DNA of 64,000 nucleotides from Lepidodermella squamata (GCA_047495785.1 JBLDXI010000020.1:1364001-1428000); one strand, 5' to 3'. Counted from the first letter of the stretch, positions 12,892-24,083 are shown. Program-made: numbers and translations. Notes: generated from the letters alone by a model not told the origin.

Positions 12892-14353
12892 TTATAATCT
12901 GTGTCGGAACGAGCCGATGCGAACAACGTGCATTTTCATTTGCCGGACAGCAGCTAAAAAGCCATCAGCAAGCGAAACGTCGACTTTCGGCTCGCTCTGC
13001 TGCTTAGAATTATGACTTTGAGCACCGTGTCTTCCATGGTGGTGGCCGTGATGATGGCCATGATGGCGCGAATGCGTCCTCTCAACGACTTTCGGCACTA
13101 TGATTGCGGCTAGAAGGCCACAGGCCATCAAATTGTGGACGATTAATCCCAAAATTGAAGTTGATAAGAAGCTCGGAGACACAAGTGAGTCGTTAACTTT
13201 AAAACCAGTCCCAGCATCACAAGGCCACATATTGGTTGAATTTGAGAAATTTGCGTCTTGTAGACAATGCTAAAAAAATAGCAGAATTAGAGAATAACAA
13301 ATGCTTGAGGTCTGGTTTTACCTTGGATTTAAAATCCTCCAAGAATCCTTCAAACTGGAACTGAGTTGCCCCAGTAGAGCATAAATGGAAAAGTTGATGC
13401 GAATGGCCAAAAATGTCGAAGCGACCTGGTGCAAAACGCTCAGGAACATGCGACAAGTAGAAAAATGCGGCTAAAAATGAGAAAACGAAATGCACGCCGT
13501 GGTGACTGATGCCTGCAGCATTGAATCCGAGTGACTCTCCGTGCCAATACCACATTCCATAACGATACAAAACCGGCCAAACAACGAAAAAATAAGGCAT
13601 TACATAGGCGAAAAATCGGCCTGAATGAATGATTATCGGGTTTGGATCTGGTGCAAGGCGAGTATAACAAGCCACCAAATGACTAAAAAATGAAGAAATA
13701 TTGCTGGAAAACACTATCAAACATTTCAAAAATTACCTGGAAGCTGCTAGAAACAATGCAATCGGCAAATAGCTCATCACAGCTAAATCAGTATCTTGAT
13801 CTCTGGCCTCGCCGTCGCGAGGAAACGAGTAGGCTCGATAAGCAGCAGCACAGCCGTAACTGTACAGTGAAATCGCCAGGTAATCAAAAGTGAAAGCGAT
13901 GTGACGGGCGTGCATCGAAAGAGTGTTGAACAAATGAGCAGCGGCCGAAAGTAAACCGTACAGTCCAGAAGTTCCGAGAAATATTACCATAGGTAAGCCC
14001 ATTGTCGACGTGAGAAATATCGAAGAATTTTCATGCAAATATAACCAAAGGAGAAGGCCAGAAAAATAAAGACCGGGTAGAAAATGGGTCCAAATGTTCC
14101 AAGTTTCATTGTGAAACGGCCAGATCATTCCTATAAGGCATTCGGATAGAGTGCATTTTGGCGGCCTATACGCTCCGAGAATGAAAGGCTCTTGGAAAAT
14201 AGCCGGTACTTCTTCGTAGAGAAATAACTTGTGGAGTCGCCAATTTTTTGCCGAGGATGATGATTCAGCAGGAATTTGCTCAGCAGGAGAGTCAGCAGTT
14301 GAATCACCGTCGTTGGCGCTTACTTTAGTTCGGCGCCGCAGGACGACGGACAT
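12892..14353 (-). CDS. PAQR family membrane progestin receptor-like (PAQR5/6-like)
   Basis: Exons 14353-13737, 13682-13322, 13269-12892. Motifs EPFILGAYRP, HNETWNIWTH, SAAAHLF, FDYLAI, PERFAPGRFDIFGHSHQLFH; multiple TM segments. Confidence 0.92.
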
Positions 14354-14522
14354 GTTGCCACCAAAAATAAAAATAAAACCTATCAACAAAATTAGAATAA
14401 GTTTTTACAAAATTCAAAGGCTTCCTGTTTCATCACAGCCTTATTTATACAAATCAGGAGGCGAGACTCAAAAATAGTGCATGAAGTAGAACCGGAGATG
14501 CCGATGCAATCAGGACATGCTG

Positions 14523-17500
14523 TCAGCTTTTGCTGCTCTTTCCTCGATAAGTGGAAACATTCTTCTTGATAGTTAATTCGGATAGGGAAGCGCATTTATC
14601 AAATAAAACTCTGACCAGACCACATGATAGCGCACTTACTACCATGACCTTAGGACTAGATTTCGGATCATTCGCTTGACCTGAGAGTTGGGCAGCATGC
14701 ACCTGAAACAATAACTATCATAAGAAACGGAAAAAATCGAATGCAATCTAAACTAACAAAATTGACACAGGTTTTAGAGGGTGGGGCTATAGCGGCCGCT
14801 ATCGGGTCAGCGGGTTCAGGAACGTCATCTTCGCCAACAGAATCATCGTTACCCGTTCTGAATTCGATGACACCGCTTTTGAGCATTCGTGATGAGCAAA
14901 CTAATTTCTCCGCATGATCGTCGTACGCCGTGCCTCGAATTCGAATTTTGAGCAAATAAGACATGGTCGTGTACAGCGTAACATTGCCGAAAGTGCTCCC
15001 CGTGATAAAACCCAGAGCTACAGAATTTTTGCGATTTTCACCCGTCGGCACAACGGGTCTTATCGATGTCATTGAGCAAATACTGCCACCACGTGTGATT
15101 GGCTTGAAAGGCCAAATATCGCTAGCTGGGCTGTCACCAAACAAGTCAAAAGCAGTTAAGGTGGATAAAACTCTGCTAGGCTTCTGCTGGACATCGGCCT
15201 CTGTTTTCGGGGTTAGTTGAGCTTCAGGTCCGGATCTTCGGAATACAAACCAGGGATTATTGGCTAAAATTGGCACCTAAAAGTAAAGGATCAAAGGATC
15301 AAAGGAAATGGCAAAACGCCAGGGTTCTTACGGAATTGCCCGGCATGAGCGTGAGATGGGTGGAGTACGGAGACATCAATGAATGCATGAGATTTCCATT
15401 TGCCAAATTAAATAAACTAAGAGCGCCGTCAATCGAAAGAGTGATAATGCAGTTACTAGTGAAAGGCGTCACTCGCACCGCGACCAAAGGTTGTGAATGG
15501 GCCCGAAAAACGCGTACAGCTAATAACGAAGACATCATAGCTCCGCCCTGGAAATAGCGAGAATGTAAAAGGACGGGTTAATTTGGTAAGAATTTCAAAA
15601 TTACCATGGAGAAAAGTGGGCTGACTGAGTCGAAGTTCCAAACAGCTATACTTGCGTCACTGAGAGCAGCAACTAGAACAGAACCGTCTCCAGGCCAATC
15701 CATGCAAACAACACGGCGACCTTGCTCCGTTGTATCATTGCTGCTAGACTCGGGCGTGGATGGGCGGTCCACCTCAAAATCCCGTGATTGCAAATGCAAG
15801 CCGATGCAGGCTTTGAAAACGCGCTGCTTATTTTTGTTTTCGTCAACCAGCTCGAATTCACCGGGCTCCGGAAGAGCAACGATCGATATTAAATTTTGGC
15901 CGCTTCCGCCAATCGCCAAAAGGCCTACGCAGTTGCTGCTTTCCGGAGCCAGCGGGCAGAATTGAAGTGCTAACGCCGGGCCTGCATCAACAGCGAGGCT
16001 ATAGGCTAGCTGGGGTGGGGCAGAAAACCGCTCATTTTCCAAGGACAGCTGCCAAATTTGAATAGCTGAAGGATGACTTGTTGCTATTCGCGTGTCCGGA
16101 TCTGGACAAGATGCCGCAGAAACAGCGATATAAACACTGGTAGGAGTCGCTTCATCTCGACGAGAAGGTGCAGAGTCGAGGGCGAAGACTCGACCTCCCA
16201 CAAAAAATACCGCCTCATTGTGGTCTGTCGAAAAAAACACAATTGTTTTATAGTGAAACGTCTTTATTATAGGCGAACTTTATTTGCACCACAGCGACAT
16301 ACTCGCCAAGTGCGTACCCCGATAAGACTAGAATAATTTTTTTTATTCTCGTTTTTTCCTTATATCACTATAACATAATATATACATAGCCACACCACTA
16401 CCATTAAATGTATTATGTATTATCACCCTTGCATGTGCTTCCAGCAAAGGCAAACACGTCGTTTTTTTTCTCCAAGCGCATCAAAGGTGGCATGATGACT
16501 CTCAAAAGCTAATTTGCTACAACCACAATTTGGTAGTATTACCAGTAAAAAATGACTTCTTAGATGGACAATAGCCAGATGTAACAATATAATTGAGTAA
16601 AAAACGGATCCGTTTTGAAAAAAAGGCATGCACGCGAAACAACCGGCGAGAATACACACCTCCCTCTGCTTCTTTTTGACGGCCGGCGAAATAATTACCT
16701 ATCTGCTTTGAGGTGGACTCGGAGGCTATTAGGTAATAGCCGCTTTTTTGTTTACTGGCAGGCGGCCATGTATAAGAAGAGGAAAAACGAGCGGGTCGAA
16801 AAAAGGAAACAGGGCGCGATGCGTCACATAAACAAAGGCATACAGAAGCGATGAATCGCCGAATGAGTACACACGATAGAAATATAATCAAAATAATAGA
16901 TCACGAGGATGTGCGGTGATAAACTGGTCTGCGCCTGCCTGAGCGCCACCGTGCAAGAAAAACAGACTTATGCGCGTAATTCTATGTATGAAGTAATAGG
17001 TAGCATGCTACTGCGAGTATTCCATTATTGTTCCCTAATAATGTAAACGGTTCCAAGTTCCAACACCAAGTCGGGTACACAATGCGTAATAGAAAAAAGA
17101 AATCCTTTACGATATACCGCAGAAAGCCCTCGATGGTAGTACAGCTATTCAGGATACAACGTAATCTACCGAATCAAGACAAAACAGCTATTATTACTTT
17201 CATCGCTGTTATTGCAAGTCGTAATCTATTATTTTTGGTGGCCACTCCACAATAACACCATCATCATCAGTTCAAAGGCCCACATCAGCCGCATTCTATA
17301 TCCATTCCTTAAAAAACGCAACTTGTCACGTTCAGACCAATTTTGAGCTAAAAAAGCTATATCAGTCCATCCTTGCGGTAGCTAAAAAGTCATGCATCCC
17401 TCGATTGATCGAGGTTATTCCTAGTTATTCATTTCGCACCTAAATATCTTATAGCAGATTTGTTCGTAAACTACAATAAAAATAATCTAAAATACGCTAT

Positions 17501-20500
17501 TAGCCCAAATGAGTTTATACCTCTTGCCTTGTTGTCACTACATTAGGAGCTTATGTCTAATAACAAAAATTTTCGAAAACAAAGCACTTCATTAAATAAT
17601 TCATTCCTTTAGCATTTGTTATACGCTACCCTAAAATTCGATTTTCAAGACCTGAAGGCTGTGGATTACTGAAATGCGAGACGATCAATGCAATGACGAC
17701 ATTAGAATAAAGAACCCGGCCAATAACAACATTTCGCTGCTCTACCTAGACCTACAGCGCGTGCAGGACCGCAATACGCTGCGAGATCGACATCTCACTG
17801 CCGTTTCGTTGGGGCTCCTTATCCAGCCTAATACTGCCACGACAGTGACGAACGAACCCGCGAGGACTGCATCGGCAATTATAGAGCGACGTCTCTCCAT
17901 TGTGAGTCACGCGGAGTCGACGAATGGCGATCGCGATGAGTTCGAAGGGGATGAAAAACCCGTAAAAGCAACACCGGTGCGTTACCACAGCCTTGATGAC
18001 CGGCTGAGATTCGCAAATACATTGGTGGCATCGAATTCTGCGGACATCATCGTAATCGACTCCTGGCCTGAAGAATGCTTGATGCGTACTTACTTCCCAG
18101 CCCTGGATGACAGGCAAAATGAGGAGGAAAGCTACGTCACCAAAACTGCGTATAGGCCTAATGGCGGACGGGGAACTATGATTGCAGTGAAACGAAAATG
18201 TTTGGTTCCCGAGAGCGAAAAACCGTCAAATGTCGGTTTAATCGGGTTAGATAGACTGATTAAGCGATGCTGGACACCGACAGCACTCTCCCATGGCGGA
18301 GTTAACCAGGCCTGGGTTCATGCGGTCGATGCAGGTCCGGCAGTTTTCCAATTTAATAAACCTCCGATTCGCCTAGCGGTGGTATCTTATGACTGTGGAA
18401 AGGGTTACCACCTGCAAAACGGCATCAACGACGCGATCTCAAACAATATTTCGAAAACTCCAGCTGCCTTGTTCTCATCAAAGTTGTTCTTGAATTGCCG
18501 CTCAACAAGTTTTTCAACGAGTTTAGACGGCGGAAGTCCTAGAATCAACAATATGCCCCTGACGAAACAACTGAGCGTTGAAACTAAGCCGCCGGTTCTA
18601 TTGAAGGCGCAACGGTCAAACTCTTCGGTTGGATCGTACCTCAGCAATGGGCCGGCGAAACGAGAACCGAGTCATGTTTGGTGGAGGGGCGCGACAGGCA
18701 AAACAAACGGTCACGCCAGCAATGGAACAGTCCACGAGGAAAGTTTTGGCTCAACGGTAAATAATAGCGGAACGGCAACGCCTCAATTTTCAAAAGACCG
18801 GAAAAATTCCTGGCTAGAAACGAGCAGAACAGCCAACCCGATGGAGGACGCGGAAGAAAGGATTAGGATAGCGGGTGAACTAAAGCAGCTAAAATCTTTC
18901 GTCTCAGTTACACTGGCTAATCAAATAAGTGATAAAAGGCGACATCTCGAGAGAAGAGCTTCAGAGACCTCCCTCGATCGTTTCAACCTATCACAAGTAA
19001 TTCATTTCCATCTCATTTTGTCCACGATTCATTATTTTTATTTTTTTTTAGAACACCAACGGAGCGCTCGCTTTAGTTGTTGGAAAATTTGGAATCAATT
19101 CTTTAAATTTGGCACAATCTCTGGCGAGTTGCGTCAATACGCACATGACCAATACTGAGTGTCAAGTGACGGTTTGCGACAACGATCGATGTGAAACAAT
19201 GGCAGCAATACGTTGGCAGCCGAAAGCGAGGCACACCAACGGATTTCACCACAACAGCAGTCAAGATGAGCTGCAAGAAAATCACCCAGTCGAAGACGTC
19301 GTGGAGAAAGCTGGCAGTGAGCAAATCTCAATAAACGACTCGACAGCGATGCTATCTTACAATAGAAATGAATGGTTGGAAGCCGAGTTCGAAAGCAGGC
19401 CTCGATTGTTTACAGTAACATTCCACTAAGATTATAGACCATGCTCTTCGCTTCTCATTTTTTTGGTCCTGAAAGTTTATTTTCTTTACTGATGATAATA
19501 TTAGCATGCACGTGCGTTGGTTTTCAAAGAAGCACTACTGGTGGCGCTCACTCGGTCTTATGTTTGGAGATTATGGTGAAGATAAGAACGCATAATTTAG
19601 GTTAAACAGGGCGGATTATTTCTAATAAAAAGGCGATAAAAACTGTAAACAGACTTACCGGATGCTTCAGATATTTTGCCTGTGAAATCGCTCAATGTTT
19701 GAGATGTGCCCGGCTGGTCTGATTCAAAGCGAAATGGCGTTAGAGAACCATCAGTTTTCAAATAATCATTCGATCTAAAAGATGAGTTTAGTAAACACTA
19801 ACGTGGAATTTAAAGCTACAAACTTTTCCAACATCCAGAGATCCGGTTGAGGTTTCAGCTTAGCTAATCGCAGCGGGAGCTGAGAGGGCTTCAAGCTGAG
19901 TTTACGCCAGAAGTGTTCGTTCAGATCAGCTACGATTTTTTTCAACGACAAGTCGCGCATATTTTTAATGTAAATGTGAGGGCCTCTGGCAGTCAGAGAT
20001 CGACCCGGTGTTCCCATTTCCGAGCGCTCTTCGTCGTCACCTGAAGAGGTCGTTTCATCGTCGGCGGAACCATTTGAATCAAAGTCTCGATCTCGGGAAT
20101 CTTCATCTTTCGATGATGGACCATCGCTTTTTATTTTACCGATTCGTTTCAACGCTTTTGAAGCGGCCTTCCGCCTACGACGAACACCGGGTTTTGATTT
20201 TTCGCTGTCACTAGCGCTCTCATCTGAGGAGTTAGTTCTTGACTTGGCTCCGCAAATATCGCGATGGCGTAGGAAAAACCACGTTGGACTCTTGAATTGT
20301 CGATGGCATTTGTCGCAGAATAAGAATCCTTGCCTTTGAAGGATGAAGTCAAGCACATCTCTCGAAACTGTTAAGCTCTTTGATTCAGCTTGCTCGTCGT
20401 ACACGGTGCAATGACTAGTCATGTAATGGCTTTGCACGTCATCGGGCTCCAGAGCAACTTTACCGGGGCATAGTGTACAATCGATCGGTCCTTTAATAGG

Positions 20501-22937
20501 CCTGTTCGCAATTTTCGCAATCGAAGGTGATTCGAACTGAGCCCGATCGCCAGCCGAACACACCTTTTCGTGGTACATGAAGCTTGGCGCCAGTCGGTAA
20601 GAAACATTGCACTTCGGACAAACGATACGGCCAAATTTCTTGATAACCAGCTCACGGATCTTCATTATCCGTATTCCCTCAGGCCAACCAGGAGCGTACT
20701 GTGAATTTTAATCTAACTTAACGAATCGATAATGCAATATAGAAACATACTAAAGCGACGTGTTTTTCAAGGTAATGATCCTGCATCAAAGCTCCGCTCT
20801 CAAATGTGACAGTTTCACTGCAAATTTGGCACTCGTAAGGTGGATCGCCGCAGCATTCTCCTTTCACGAGTCGATCCATAATATTGAAAGGAATTTTGCG
20901 AGCCTAAGGAAAGTGAGGTTCATGATTATAAGTTTTTATCAATTTTCAAGCGACTTACTGTTCCGTCGCATGAGTCTCGATGGCGTATGAATGATCTGAC
21001 TGTGCAGCGATAGTCAGCTTTGCAGCGAGGGCAAACAAGGTAACCATCTCTCTGTTTCCTTTGTTCCAGCTCCGATATTGATAGACCTTCAATTGATGTT
21101 TCATCCTCACTTTCACTAGCCTCTTTTGCTTTCGAGCTTTTCGAGATCAAGCAACTGCGATCGTTCACAGGTTTGCTATCACAACGTCCTTCATGTATAA
21201 GCAAACCTTGACCAGTCTTATCGAACTTCCTGAAACAATATTGGCATCTGACATGGCCTGTCAATTTCAATATAATATCGAGGGCGTTGATCGAGCGAGA
21301 CCAACCAGGCTCTTTCGCAGTGTACTAATTGAGAAGCATCATAGAAGGATAAGTTAATTGCTAAAACTGAGGCTTACAAGAACACTGTGCTCGAAAGCGT
21401 AGTGACGAAACATATCAGCGACTGGAGGGTCGTCAACTGGGCAAAACAGGCAGTTACCAGAGACCGGGTTTTCCGACATAGCTTTAAGGTTGAAACCAGA
21501 TTCGTTGTCATCAGATCCGACGCTGAAAGTCTGGCAACGCCTGAAATGCTTCACGAAGTAGGAAACCGGCGAGCGGTATTCGTTATTACAAATGGAGCAC
21601 TTCAAAACGCCAGTTTTCTCGTAAATTTCCTCGAGTTGAGCCACTGTGTGACCGTTGATGAGCGCGCTTTCTCCCTCGCCCGCATCTTGACTAGCCGTAT
21701 CACTGCTGAAACCATCAAATGGCGCGGGCCCATGCTTTGCAGGATTACGGGGGCATCGAGTTTCGTGAATTACGAGTCCGAAACCGGAGCGCCCGAATTC
21801 TCTCGCACAAAACTGACAGGTCAGCTTTCCAGTCAATTTAAGCACATTATCAAGCGCTGATACATCTCGATGGTAACCAGGAGGTTCAGGTGAATACTGC
21901 AAGCAAATAATTAAAGTATTGTTACAAGAAACAGTTAAACATACTATGGCAGAATGTGAGACGGCATAGTGGCGAAAGATGTCTTTGATAGGCCCAGTGC
22001 CTTCGGGACACAACTTGCAAGTGTCTGTTTTCGGCTTCGGAAATTGTTTGTAGAAAGGAACCACATACTTCGGAACTTCTGTGAACGAATCGTCGAGTGA
22101 CTTTCTCGCCCTACCAGTAACTCTCTGCTCGCCCGTGCACGATTGCACATGTTTTATAAAATAGGAAACAGAACTTTTGTAAGCAGCCTTGCACTTGGAG
22201 CATTTCAACACTCCATATCGATTGAATTTCGACTCGAGTTGTTTTTCGGTAAGGCCATCGTACAAATTAGCAGAATTTTCGGACTCATTGACGTCGGCGG
22301 TCTTTGGCGTACGGCCTGATTTTGCCGAATCATCATTTGGTTCCTCAGCCTCATCTTCAGCGCGGGTCAACTTCTTTGGTCTGCCACGCCTACCAGGACT
22401 TTTCAGTTGCGTAGAATTTTTCAAAACAGACGGACTAGCTTCTCTGCTTTCCGTAGCTGATTTGGTAGAGATTTCTACTGAATCTTGGATGATCGAGGCA
22501 GTTGTCCGCTTGGCCACTGGAGTAACAGCTGCGGGTGATCCTATACCAGATTTTGACTTCTTAGATTCAACAGGCGAGTTAGATTTCGAATGCGATGGAT
22601 CGACGTGGTCAGTTCCGGCCGTCGGAGTTTCAGCATTGGGCTTGGGGAGACCACGCTTCTTAGCCGAATCAACATCTGAAGAGGTAGCATTTAGATTGCC
22701 TGCGCGTGTAGCCCGATAAGGTATAGGTGTAGTGCTAGAACTGCCGTTGTACTGCCATCGCGAGCTGCTAGCCTTGTCTACTTTTTCAGCTACTTCTTTG
22801 CCGTAGCGAAATGAGGGGCTATGGTCAGCAGTTGTTCTTTTAGGCCTAGCTGATGCAACAGTTGGAGACGTCAAACGCTTCTTCTTTGGCTCGTCTTTTG
22901 CAGGTTCATTTGCGGAATTTTGAGATTTTCTAGGCAT
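14523..22937 (-). CDS. GTF3C2: ~1518-aa protein: AT-hook + 11 zinc fingers (7 C2HC, 4 C2H2; ZNF512-like) fused to a C-terminal WD40 TFIIIC subunit 2 (TFIIIC110/Tfc6)-like domain
   Basis: Ten exons: 22937-21945, 21896-21378, 21324-20959, 20903-20751, 20698-19824, 19774-19659, 16224-15605, 15547-15332, 15276-14758, 14702-14523 (4557 nt, in frame). The phase-1 donor at 19658 (G|gtaagt) matches the phase-1 acceptor at 16225 (ttttcgacag|AC). GTF3C2-like motifs FFVGGRVFALD..P, IQIW, LALQFCP, GLLAIG and C-terminal VSALSCGLVRV. Confidence 0.78.
17674..19429 (+). CDS. Nested antisense gene (~566 aa) of unknown function, possibly a degenerate endonuclease/exonuclease/phosphatase (EEP)-fold protein
   Basis: Exons 17674-18996 and 19052-19429 joined in frame by a 55-nt GT-AG intron; lies wholly inside intron 16225-19658 of the GTF3C2-like gene. 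Confidence 0.75.
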
Positions 22938-23045
22938 AAATTTGATAAAATCTACTGAACAAGACATTTCATTAAAAGCAATATCACTAAACTCAAATAA
23001 ATTAAGATAATGCAAAAATATTATAAAAGTATTATAGGCGATGCT

Positions 23046-23534
23046 TTACAGAGATTCACCACGATAGAAAGCACAGTTTTTGTCGGTCTCGTTGATCTTT
23101 ATTTCGAAAAGCTGGAAGCTTGAATGGTTCGAAAGCTGCTTGATGACTCCATCCCAAATATAGATACATAAATTTTCGGTGGTGCTAAAGAATGCAGGTT
23201 TGGTTTTATTGTTTTGTATTTAAAAACTTTCAAAAATTTACCTCACGACATTTTCAAAATAAGGAACGTCTTTGTCCAGATTTCGATGGTCCAAACCTTT
23301 GAGCACATGCCCCAACACTTCTTTAAGCACCTGAATATTAGCTACCATTCCAGTTTTTTGATCCACCGTGCCTCGAACCGTCATCTCGACGCGATAATTA
23401 TGCCCATGACCATTTGGATTGTTGCACTTGCTGAAAATGTCTTTGTTCTGCTCATCAGACAATAGTTTGCTATGGAGTCTATGACTAGCAGAAAATGATT
23501 CAGTTCTGGTCAAGTATACAATTGGTGATGGCAT
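23046..23534 (-). CDS. PTS: 6-pyruvoyl tetrahydropterin synthase
   Basis: Exons 23534-23242 and 23184-23046. [61 protein letters not shown]. Confidence 0.97.
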
Positions 23535-24083
23535 TGAAATTGTATAACAATCTAAAAATTGCAAAAAGACGTATTTTTGGTTATTCATTGTGATATTTCT
23601 CTCAGAAGGAGGCAAGATATATGCGCAATATCCACGAAGCAAATTTGATAATAAATCACACAGTTTTTCAACGGCCATTTCGCATAGAATCGTAGCGCCG
23701 CAATTAATTCAGATGAATTAAAATAGTAATAACCGATGGTATTTGTTATAGGAATACATTTATATGTATATATAAAGATAAAAGACAATTAAGCAGCAAG
23801 ATTTCGAAGAAATTAACATGCCAAATGCATGCGAAAAATTCACTTGAATATAATTTAATTTCAGAGCAGTAAGCCAAATGTATGACGATCGAAAATACAT
23901 CAACCCAGAAAGATGATCACTATATTAACATTGCACGAATACCACCATGTCGCAAAGCTAGTGTGCTTATAGCAAAATCAAAACTTAATCCTTTCCTCTA
24001 ATTCGAAGTGATCAAAAATAATAATCAATTGCAACATCGAGCTAGAAAACACTGCACCAGTCCATGGTTTTTCAAGGGAAGGT

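Follow-up and report, generated by a model that had tools for sequence, protein, structure and literature searches.

TFIIIC is usually described from yeast and human, in which the 110/91-kDa subunit is fingerless and the reading of the B-box is assigned to TFIIIC220. Human GTF3C2 (TFIIIC110) is 911 amino acids (aa) in length, and to our knowledge its yeast counterpart, tau91 (Tfc6), has no zinc fingers. A second group of described proteins, ZNF512 and ZNF512B, is built around spaced fingers, and we know of no ZNF512 protein that carries a WD40 propeller. In a study of the human complex, the domain diagram gives TFIIIC110 a WD40 domain alone, and in the structure the TFIIIC110 propeller pairs with TFIIIC90 and stabilizes WH4 of TFIIIC220 (PMC11811891). 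ZNF512 and ZNF512B have been described as binding satellite repeats directly through long-linker fingers and as recruiting SUV39H (PMC13537249). Here we analyze a gene on the minus strand of a 64,000-nucleotide (nt) stretch of Lepidodermella squamata DNA (GCA_047495785.1, JBLDXI010000020.1:1364001-1428000), referred to below as the window, in which it occupies positions 22937 to 14523. We conclude that the product of this single gene is very probably orthologous to TFIIIC110/GTF3C2 (yeast tau91), which is the WD40 subunit in the tauB module of TFIIIC, and that it is extended by a finger arm in which a smaller zinc-finger cassette is amplified.

Results

Rebuilding the gene from the sequence gave 10 minus-strand exons (22937-14523) in a single open frame. 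The spliced coding sequence is 4557 nt long, has one stop codon, at its end, and encodes 1518 aa. All nine introns are of the GT..AG type; eight of them measure 48 to 57 nt, and the remaining one, intron 6 (19658-16225, minus strand), measures 3434 nt, is removed in complementary DNA (cDNA), and hosts a nested gene on the opposite strand. The donor of intron 6 is in phase 1 (exon 6 ends at 19659, with GT at 19658), as is its acceptor (AG ending at 16225, with exon 7 starting at 16224), and the join translates as ...EAS-D-HNEAVFFVGGRVFALD.

The N-terminal part of the protein carries 11 fingers by pattern scan, seven of the form CX2C..HX3C (C2HC) and four of the form CX2C..HX4H (C2H2). Exon 1 (22937-21945) opens with the start codon at 22937 and encodes a Ser/Lys-rich low-complexity N-terminus, an AT-hook core, finger 1 (C2HC), and finger 2 (C2H2). 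The core, GRRGRPKK at aa 182-189 (22394-22371), is an R-G-R-P core with basic flanks (SPGRRGRPKKLTR) that is of AT-hook type by pattern match and may bind the minor groove; Pfam reports no AT-hook model for the protein. Exon 2 (21896-21378), which is preceded by a 48-nt in-frame intron, encodes fingers 3 (C2HC), 4 (C2HC), and 5 (C2H2), and the cassette profile introduced below matches it at aa 344-382 and 419-453. Exon 3 (21324-20959) encodes fingers 6 and 7 (both C2HC), and exon 4 (20903-20751) encodes finger 8 (C2H2). Exon 5 (20698-19824) encodes fingers 9 (C2HC), 10 (C2H2), and 11 (C2HC), after which come the basic motif RRRRKAASKAL (RRRRKAASKALKRIG), an acidic tract, and the first half of a pre-propeller segment (..DLWMLEK). 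The second half of that segment (SNDYLKTDGSLTPFRFE...) is in exon 6 (19774-19659), which has no in-frame ATG and ends in the phase-1 donor.

The remaining exons, also on the minus strand, encode the propeller half. Exon 7 (16224-15605) holds the start of a WD40 propeller of the GTF3C2 type (FFVGGRVFALD ... AVWNF), and the first Met of the propeller half lies ~170 residues inside this exon. Exon 8 (15547-15332) encodes a propeller blade, exon 9 (15276-14758) encodes divergent propeller blades, and exon 10 (14702-14523) encodes the last blade, the C-terminal G-L-V-R motif (SCGLVRVLF), and the stop codon; the joints across the introns that precede these three exons (57, 55, and 55 nt, respectively) are all present in cDNA.

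Two public read runs, X1 and X2, were compared over 14500-20400 (5,901 letters). Run X2 is DNA, with even coverage throughout and no joints. Run X1 is cDNA, with a depth of zero at 16273-17651, canonical joints at introns 7/8, 8/9, and 9/10, and a SMART-type adapter on one loose end. An X1 contig of 527 nt, with a depth of 30.8, joins 16224 to 19659 and skips the intervening 3434 nt; of its length, 105 nt belong to exon 6 and 422 nt to exon 7, the skipped segment has the ends CT..AC on the plus strand (GT..AG on the gene strand), and its depth equals that of the flanking exons. None of the joints at 16224/19659, 7/8, 8/9, and 9/10 occurs in X2. As the 16224/19659 joint is present in cDNA, the predicted splice exists in RNA. 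The exon 5/6 junction is predicted from the open frame, the splice consensus, an intron length like that of the others, and homology. Because the intron at this junction splits the pre-propeller motif, exon 5, with fingers 9 to 11, also encodes the start of the GTF3C2-specific part. One gene, in which a finger and AT-hook arm is joined to a GTF3C2 propeller, is thus supported. Many single-base differences occur in part of the depth of both runs across 14709-20351 (in about half of the depth in X2), consistent with two haplotypes or strains.

As judged from sequence comparison, the C-terminal half of the protein belongs to the GTF3C2/tau91 family, and the propeller and the segment preceding it are homologous over their whole length. 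Searched alone against solved structures, exon 7 matches human GTF3C2 (8cli_C, residues 403-493, E 0.011), and its other matches are generic WD repeats. When exon 7 was searched exhaustively against 1.8 billion proteins, it matched, each time over a single full-length stretch, proteins named GTF3C2 (general transcription factor 3C polypeptide 2) from sturgeon (6.7e-5), Umbra (3.3e-4), tick, barnacle, and the tunicate Clavelina. Neither exon 9 nor exon 10, searched singly, has a match in Pfam or the PDB. A propeller profile (A3) made from nine invertebrate sequences, with the L. squamata protein among them, reaches human GTF3C2 (8cli_C) at 3.8e-50 and yeast tau91 (2j04_B, 8ffz_E, and 9gc3_B) at ~1e-6; unrelated WD40 proteins are matched at 1e-7 or worse, in the last repeat only.

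The full alignment spans the protein from the pre-propeller motif W..L..YLP..SP.F through to the C-terminal GLVR. The pre-propeller segment DLWMLEK|SNDYLKTDGSLTPFRFE is aligned to KDWKFLSESEALNYLPQEEKSPPFRIR of the sturgeon protein, the alignment then passes through FVGG.V.ALD, IQIW, LAY..A.D.GP....FCP, GLLA, and AVWN, and the C-terminal family motif S-G-h-V-R is represented by SCGLVRVLF, compared with SGIVRAH and AGFVRVR elsewhere in the family. Alignments made by phmmer to GTF3C2 orthologs start within exon 6. The protein also has the basic N-terminal region with an AT-hook-type core (GRRGRPKK) that is expected of the GTF3C2 family. A repetitive protein of 1588 aa, matched in four stretches (P0004), was considered as a GTF3C2 relative and rejected as unrelated.

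Much of this had been anticipated by the first-pass annotation, which was made from the window alone. It had read the spliced finger region as lacking a stop of its own and as ending in a phase-1 donor that fits the acceptor of the WD40 exons, giving a ~1518-aa frame, and the rebuilt gene model agrees; the layout that it gave for the N-terminal part (AT-hook, seven CX2C..HX3C and four C2H2 fingers, RRRRKAASKAL, and acidic tract) was recovered by pattern scan and translation. The splice from 19659 to 16224, for which it had proposed an RNA check, is present in the cDNA run X1 and absent from the DNA run X2. The grouping of the WD40 half with GTF3C2 holds up in the profile comparison with human GTF3C2 (3.8e-50) and yeast tau91 (~1e-6), and the open frame, the cDNA splice, the profile, and the alignment together uphold its single gene with a WD40 half of the GTF3C2/TFIIIC110 family.

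A finger cassette lies ahead of the propeller in the GTF3C2 orthologs of ants, wasps, a planthopper, thrips, a mayfly, a stick insect, mosquitoes, ticks, a barnacle, and cephalopods. The cassette consists of a C2H2 finger, ~50-55 aa with a conserved aromatic residue and a helix (..AL..vLK..), and a C2HC finger (C..C...+S..GF.SH...C), and it is usually followed by a third C2H2 finger ~30 aa on and by a further pair ~135 aa downstream. A profile made from 16 arthropod and cephalopod cassettes, from which the L. squamata protein was left out, scores 89.9 bits on that protein (the best of 500 shuffles scored 8.1), 81.3 bits on the protein of a relative known from a metagenome (described below), including three whole-cassette matches, and 29-85 bits on left-out invertebrate orthologs. 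Fingers 10 and 11 match the whole two-finger cassette in register, at 23 bits. The invariant columns of the cassette alignment (A5) are C, C, H, C, C, H, and C, and all seven of these zinc-ligand columns are present in L. squamata.

Fingers ahead of the propeller were also found by pattern scan in one tunicate and one jellyfish ortholog. A date for the cassette before the origin of Bilateria was considered and dropped, because the profile fails on these fingers. Among vertebrates, all 17 GTF3C2 proteins that were pattern scanned (sharks, rays, hagfish, lungfish, frogs, and a lizard included) have no fingers, and none of 38 sequences scores above 3 bits with the cassette profile, in line with the earlier statement that vertebrate GTF3C2 lacks a finger array. 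AT-hook cores of the form (K/R)RGRP(K/R) occur in the sturgeon, ant, and jellyfish (five copies) orthologs, with KRGRK variants in shark and Xenopus, and such sequence matches make AT-hook cores a family trait.

Because arthropod and mollusc orthologs carry a homologous cassette at the same place, the order of AT-hook, fingers, acidic tract, and propeller is inherited and not newly fused. The first-pass annotation had inferred a Pol III factor with a sequence-specific DNA-reading module, possibly an ancestral ZNF512-GTF3C2 fusion, with the reservation that finding it already described in many invertebrates would take the novelty away. A special or new fusion was not borne out: finger cassettes are the rule in insects, ticks, a barnacle, and cephalopods, and most of the novelty therefore goes. 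Full-text literature searches found no paper on fingers in TFIIIC110 orthologs; the layout is visible in public protein records. What L. squamata has is an enlarged version of an old, overlooked layout. The cassette also occurs at residues 2604-2831 of a mosquito record named "titin" (P0036; Armigeres subalbatus XP_062564440.1, 3489 aa), which clusters with a GTF3C2-like protein and looks like a misnamed or merged gene model.

Within the L. squamata array, one unit seems to be present three times, as fingers 3-5, 6-8, and 9-11, and an intron occurs at an identical point after each of the C2H2 fingers 2, 5, and 8 (H....H xxx | Y..). By the profile matches, the eleven fingers are amplified copies of the two-finger protostome GTF3C2 cassette. 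The array would have arisen by about three internal duplications of the finger unit, and the vertebrates would have lost their fingers.

The ortholog of a relative is present on contigs of one environmental metagenome (ENA ERZ23486764). On one of these (L003), a PTPS gene is followed, after 46 nt, by a finger gene with all eleven fingers. The array is 43% identical to that of L. squamata, and all 44 zinc ligands are kept (fingers 3-11 in L003 and fingers 1-2 in the protein P0001). The N-terminus, MPRKSQ..., matches MPIRKKQ... in P0001; the AT-hook core has a different position in the relative, where SGRPRRQ occurs near the N-terminus. On two other contigs (L001 and L002), the antisense gene is followed by the propeller exons and these by a PAQR gene, in the same order as in L. 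squamata, and exon 7 of the relative opens after the same phase-1 acceptor and likewise lacks a start. L003 and L001 are ~1 kb apart (L003 ends at aa 880, and L001 starts inside the nested gene) and leave the junction of the finger and propeller parts unbridged. The introns at 21377-21325, 20958-20904, and 20750-20699 are absent in the relative, in which fingers 3-11 form one uninterrupted open reading frame (L003 2073-3671); these short introns of the finger array were thus either gained in the L. squamata lineage or lost in that of the relative since the two split.

The likeness of the fingers to those of ZNF512 was examined with Pfam and with profiles. Fingers 1, 7, and 9 each have ZNF512_C2HC (PF21276) as their best family, at 19.2, 19.6, and 18.9 bits, respectively (E ~1e-3 each), against a cutoff of 27, and on exons 1 and 2 together this model scores 21.2 bits, also below the gathering score of 27. 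The same model has no match on the other four C2HC fingers, and PF21367 (ZNF512_zf-C2H2) has none in the protein. The array of the relative scores 12.6 bits (E 0.12) with PF21276. In Pfam scans of the finger segments of 18 ortholog regions, ZNF512_C2HC came out on top only for the ant, on a C2HC finger and at 19 bits, below the cutoff; other segments gave ZNF451, Di19, or C2HC_2 models.

Compared with solved structures, a C2HC-finger profile (A2, from the L. squamata, barnacle, mosquito, and tick proteins) places 2gqj first (1.3e-6), SALL4 next (1.4e-3), and 2ctd (ZNF512) at 0.25. With a two-finger profile (A4), 2gqj is matched as one stretch (2.2e-6) and ranks sixth, and 2ctd is matched at 1.9e-4; ordinary multi-finger proteins stand higher by summed repeats. 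The entry 2gqj was deposited as KIAA1196, which we take to be ZNF512B. In the L. squamata protein, the distance from the first Cys of a C2HC finger to the start of the following finger is 47-73 aa, and the adjacent C2HC-C2H2 pair of the ZNF512 type (within ~30 aa) was not found; tight C2HC-C2H2 pairs are present in GTF3C2 orthologs from insects, cephalopods, and a tunicate. Compared as single sequences with solved structures, the finger exons returned noise only (nuclear receptors, POGZ, and Elf1; E ~0.1 or worse), a word-indexed homolog search with the finger region returned one fragment from the relative and no ZNF512, and an ESM Atlas search with the same region returned unrelated finger clusters at chance-level scores.

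The ZNF512 likeness that the first-pass annotation had noted by eye therefore stands in part. PF21276 is the best family for three of the seven C2HC fingers, and ZNF512B is the top structure match of profile A2, but the Pfam scores are below the cutoff, the tight pair is missing, and the fold search described below is generic. We regard the likeness as weak and suggestive and do not file the protein under ZNF512.

The long intron of the TFIIIC110 gene contains, on the plus strand, a nested antisense gene with a transcript at 17654-19637 and a coding sequence at 17674-18996 and 19052-19429. It encodes 566 aa, is interrupted by a GT..AG intron of 55 nt, and has an AATAAA at 19624. The gene is transcribed: cDNA contigs contain the joint across this intron (18996/19052) and reach an adapter-capped end at 17654. 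The poly(A) signal of the gene lies 35 nt, and its transcript end 22 nt, from the exon-6 donor. The protein has no Pfam match and no ESM Atlas match, and its only detectable homolog is encoded by the relative's gene at the same nested antisense place (47% identity). By these comparisons, the nested gene is a conserved orphan.

The PTPS, TFIIIC110, and PAQR (HlyIII) genes lie on one strand at 13217-23678 (minus), with gaps of ~300 nt and ~170 nt; in the relative, the distance from PTPS to the finger gene is 46 nt (cluster regions L003 800-1100 and L001 4380-4706). An unpaired acceptor, ttgttcag, is found 18 nt upstream of the ATG at 22937. These three genes possibly constitute an operon-like, trans-spliced cluster that is conserved in the relative.

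Discussion

We conclude that TFIIIC110 of L. squamata, which is very probably the product of a single gene, combines a propeller shared with human and yeast with an arm shared with many invertebrates. By analogy with the human structure, the propeller would pair with TFIIIC90 and hold the winged helices of TFIIIC220 on the B-box. The arm is predicted to be flexible, with its AT-hook and with fingers that are 25-50 aa apart, and may add multivalent DNA contacts beside the B-box or away from it. Finger spacing of this order makes contiguous triplets unreadable and suits short, separated contacts. Several such contacts could lengthen the footprint around genes transcribed by RNA polymerase III (Pol III) or tether TFIIIC at extra sites. 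A model of the cassette (fingers 10 and 11; predicted local distance difference test [pLDDT] score, 71.5) has two classical beta-beta-alpha fingers, a helix before the second, and a disordered linker.

A number of observations weigh against this reading, and we collect them here. The X1 contigs leave a 111-nt hole (19764-19874) over the exon 5/6 junction (19824/19774). The depth of both bins is fully explained by neighboring contigs, and the 49-nt intron 5/6 is seen neither spliced nor retained. This is the one junction in the 3' part of the model without RNA support, and the cause is probably short unitigs between polymorphisms. Fingers and propeller are not seen together on any single molecule in the RNA contigs, and there may be a finger-only isoform that ends inside the long intron. 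The propeller has little pairwise similarity to vertebrate GTF3C2 (E 0.011 with the human chain alone), and exons 8 and 9 are very divergent. The cassette profile has no match on the tunicate or jellyfish fingers; these are not detectably the same cassette, and the age of the cassette can be traced, on present comparisons, within protostomes. As to function, DNA binding by the fingers is something that we purely infer, and Foldseek searches with the cassette model returned nothing significant (generic C2H2 arrays, E 0.12 or worse) and nothing on ZNF512.

It is conceivable, though rather unlikely, that the spaced fingers of this same gene bind protein or RNA (Pol III factors, chromatin proteins, or nascent transcripts) and not DNA sequence. 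C2HC fingers are often protein or RNA binders, and linkers of 25-50 aa are incompatible with reading contiguous triplets in the manner of classical tandem C2H2 arrays. However, the arm includes an AT-hook core, a feature found repeatedly in the family; the fingers are predicted to be of the beta-beta-alpha type, and their nearest fold neighbors, none of them significant, are DNA-bound C2H2 arrays. In ZNF512 and ZNF512B, moreover, long-linker fingers are described as binding satellite DNA directly (PMC13537249).

A related idea, which we hold to be doubtful but worth stating, is that vertebrate ZNF512 and ZNF512B descend from the finger arm of an ancestral TFIIIC110. The arm would, equally doubtfully, have split off on the vertebrate stem, or have been duplicated there and then lost from GTF3C2, with the finger protein staying nearby (human 2p23). 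A single human interval of 417 kb is listed as containing both GTF3C2 and ZNF512, separated by ten genes (PMC2570409). The idea is kept alive by the presence of fingers in protostome, tunicate, and jellyfish orthologs but in no checked vertebrate, by the top match of profile A2, by sub-threshold PF21276 matches in two distant lineages, and by the distance of at most 417 kb between the human genes. In full-text literature searches, ZNF512 and GTF3C2 co-occur only in locus lists. If the idea is true, ZNF512, a reader of satellites and heterochromatin, has a common origin with a Pol III factor, and in invertebrates TFIIIC110 may even now perform both functions.

The opposite direction, in which the TFIIIC110 gene of the ancestors of L. 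squamata acquired a gene of the ZNF512 family as a lineage-specific fusion, we consider very improbable. It would agree with PF21276 being the best-scoring family for three fingers (E ~1e-3 each) and with ZNF512B (2gqj) being the top match of the C2HC-finger profile. Against it, the fingers match, at 90 bits, a cassette that is already at the same place in arthropod and mollusc GTF3C2; the Pfam scores are 19-21 bits where 27 are needed, with E 0.12 for the array of the relative; and a finger of the ant ortholog has a similar sub-threshold PF21276 match, so that the likeness is a trait of the family. Least probable of all are two adjoining genes, a zinc-finger gene (22937 to ~19600) and a TFIIIC110 gene (16224-14523), with the cDNA joint as occasional read-through or a chimera. 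In favor of this reading, the joining intron has 60 times the length of the other eight and contains another gene, an unspliced exon 6 meets a stop 22 codons on, and the exon 5/6 junction is not seen in the X1 contigs. Against it, the propeller part lacks an in-frame start (its first Met comes ~170 residues into exon 7, and the relative is the same), the joint contig (depth, 30.8) is as deep as the flanking exons, the GTF3C2 pre-propeller segment can be aligned to exon 6 together with the last part of exon 5, and other phyla have fingers and propeller in one predicted protein that NCBI and UniProt call GTF3C2-like.

Taken as a single TFIIIC110 gene, the L. squamata locus is a modest result, an ortholog with an enlarged form of a layout already in public protein records. 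The wider point is that in much of the animal kingdom the TFIIIC110 subunit has its own conserved zinc-finger cassette and AT-hooks, and that in L. squamata the cassette has been amplified to eleven fingers, under selection. This points to an unstudied arm of TFIIIC in invertebrates that is predicted to contact DNA or partners. Such an arm could bear on extra roles of TFIIIC at non-tRNA sites and chromatin boundaries, and it raises a testable idea on the origin of the ZNF512 proteins.

The protein thus overlaps, each time only in part, with three described or recorded groups. With human TFIIIC110 (8CLI chain C) and yeast tau91 (Tfc6; 2J04 and 8FFZ), it shares the propeller, from the first blade (FxGGPVxALDWCP there and FVGGRVFALDSAP here) to GLVR, as well as the pre-propeller segment, a basic/acidic N-terminal region, and an AT-hook-like core. 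In contrast to the vertebrate proteins, which have no fingers, it has eleven, and its propeller is unusually divergent; the solved chain of yeast tau91 (8ffz_E) has 672 aa, compared with 1518 aa in L. squamata. With ZNF512 and ZNF512B (PF21276 and PF21367; 2CTD and 2GQJ), it shares a mixture of C2HC and C2H2 fingers and long linkers, whereas its Pfam scores fall below the cutoff and it has neither a PF21367 match nor a tight C2HC-C2H2 pair. The third group comprises the invertebrate GTF3C2-like proteins (Anopheles A0A182Q479, Rhipicephalus A0A224YND2, Pollicipes XP_037079097.1, Octopus vulgaris, and the LOC proteins of ants and wasps), which have the same order of AT-hooks (in some), cassette, acidic tract, pre-propeller segment, and propeller. 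Those proteins have one cassette, a close third C2H2 finger, and one distal pair, for a total of 3-5 fingers, whereas the L. squamata protein lacks the adjacent third finger, has its unit amplified to 11 fingers, and includes an extra class of C2HC finger (LE..x..G.LxCxxC..Y+S..SYF.+H...C).

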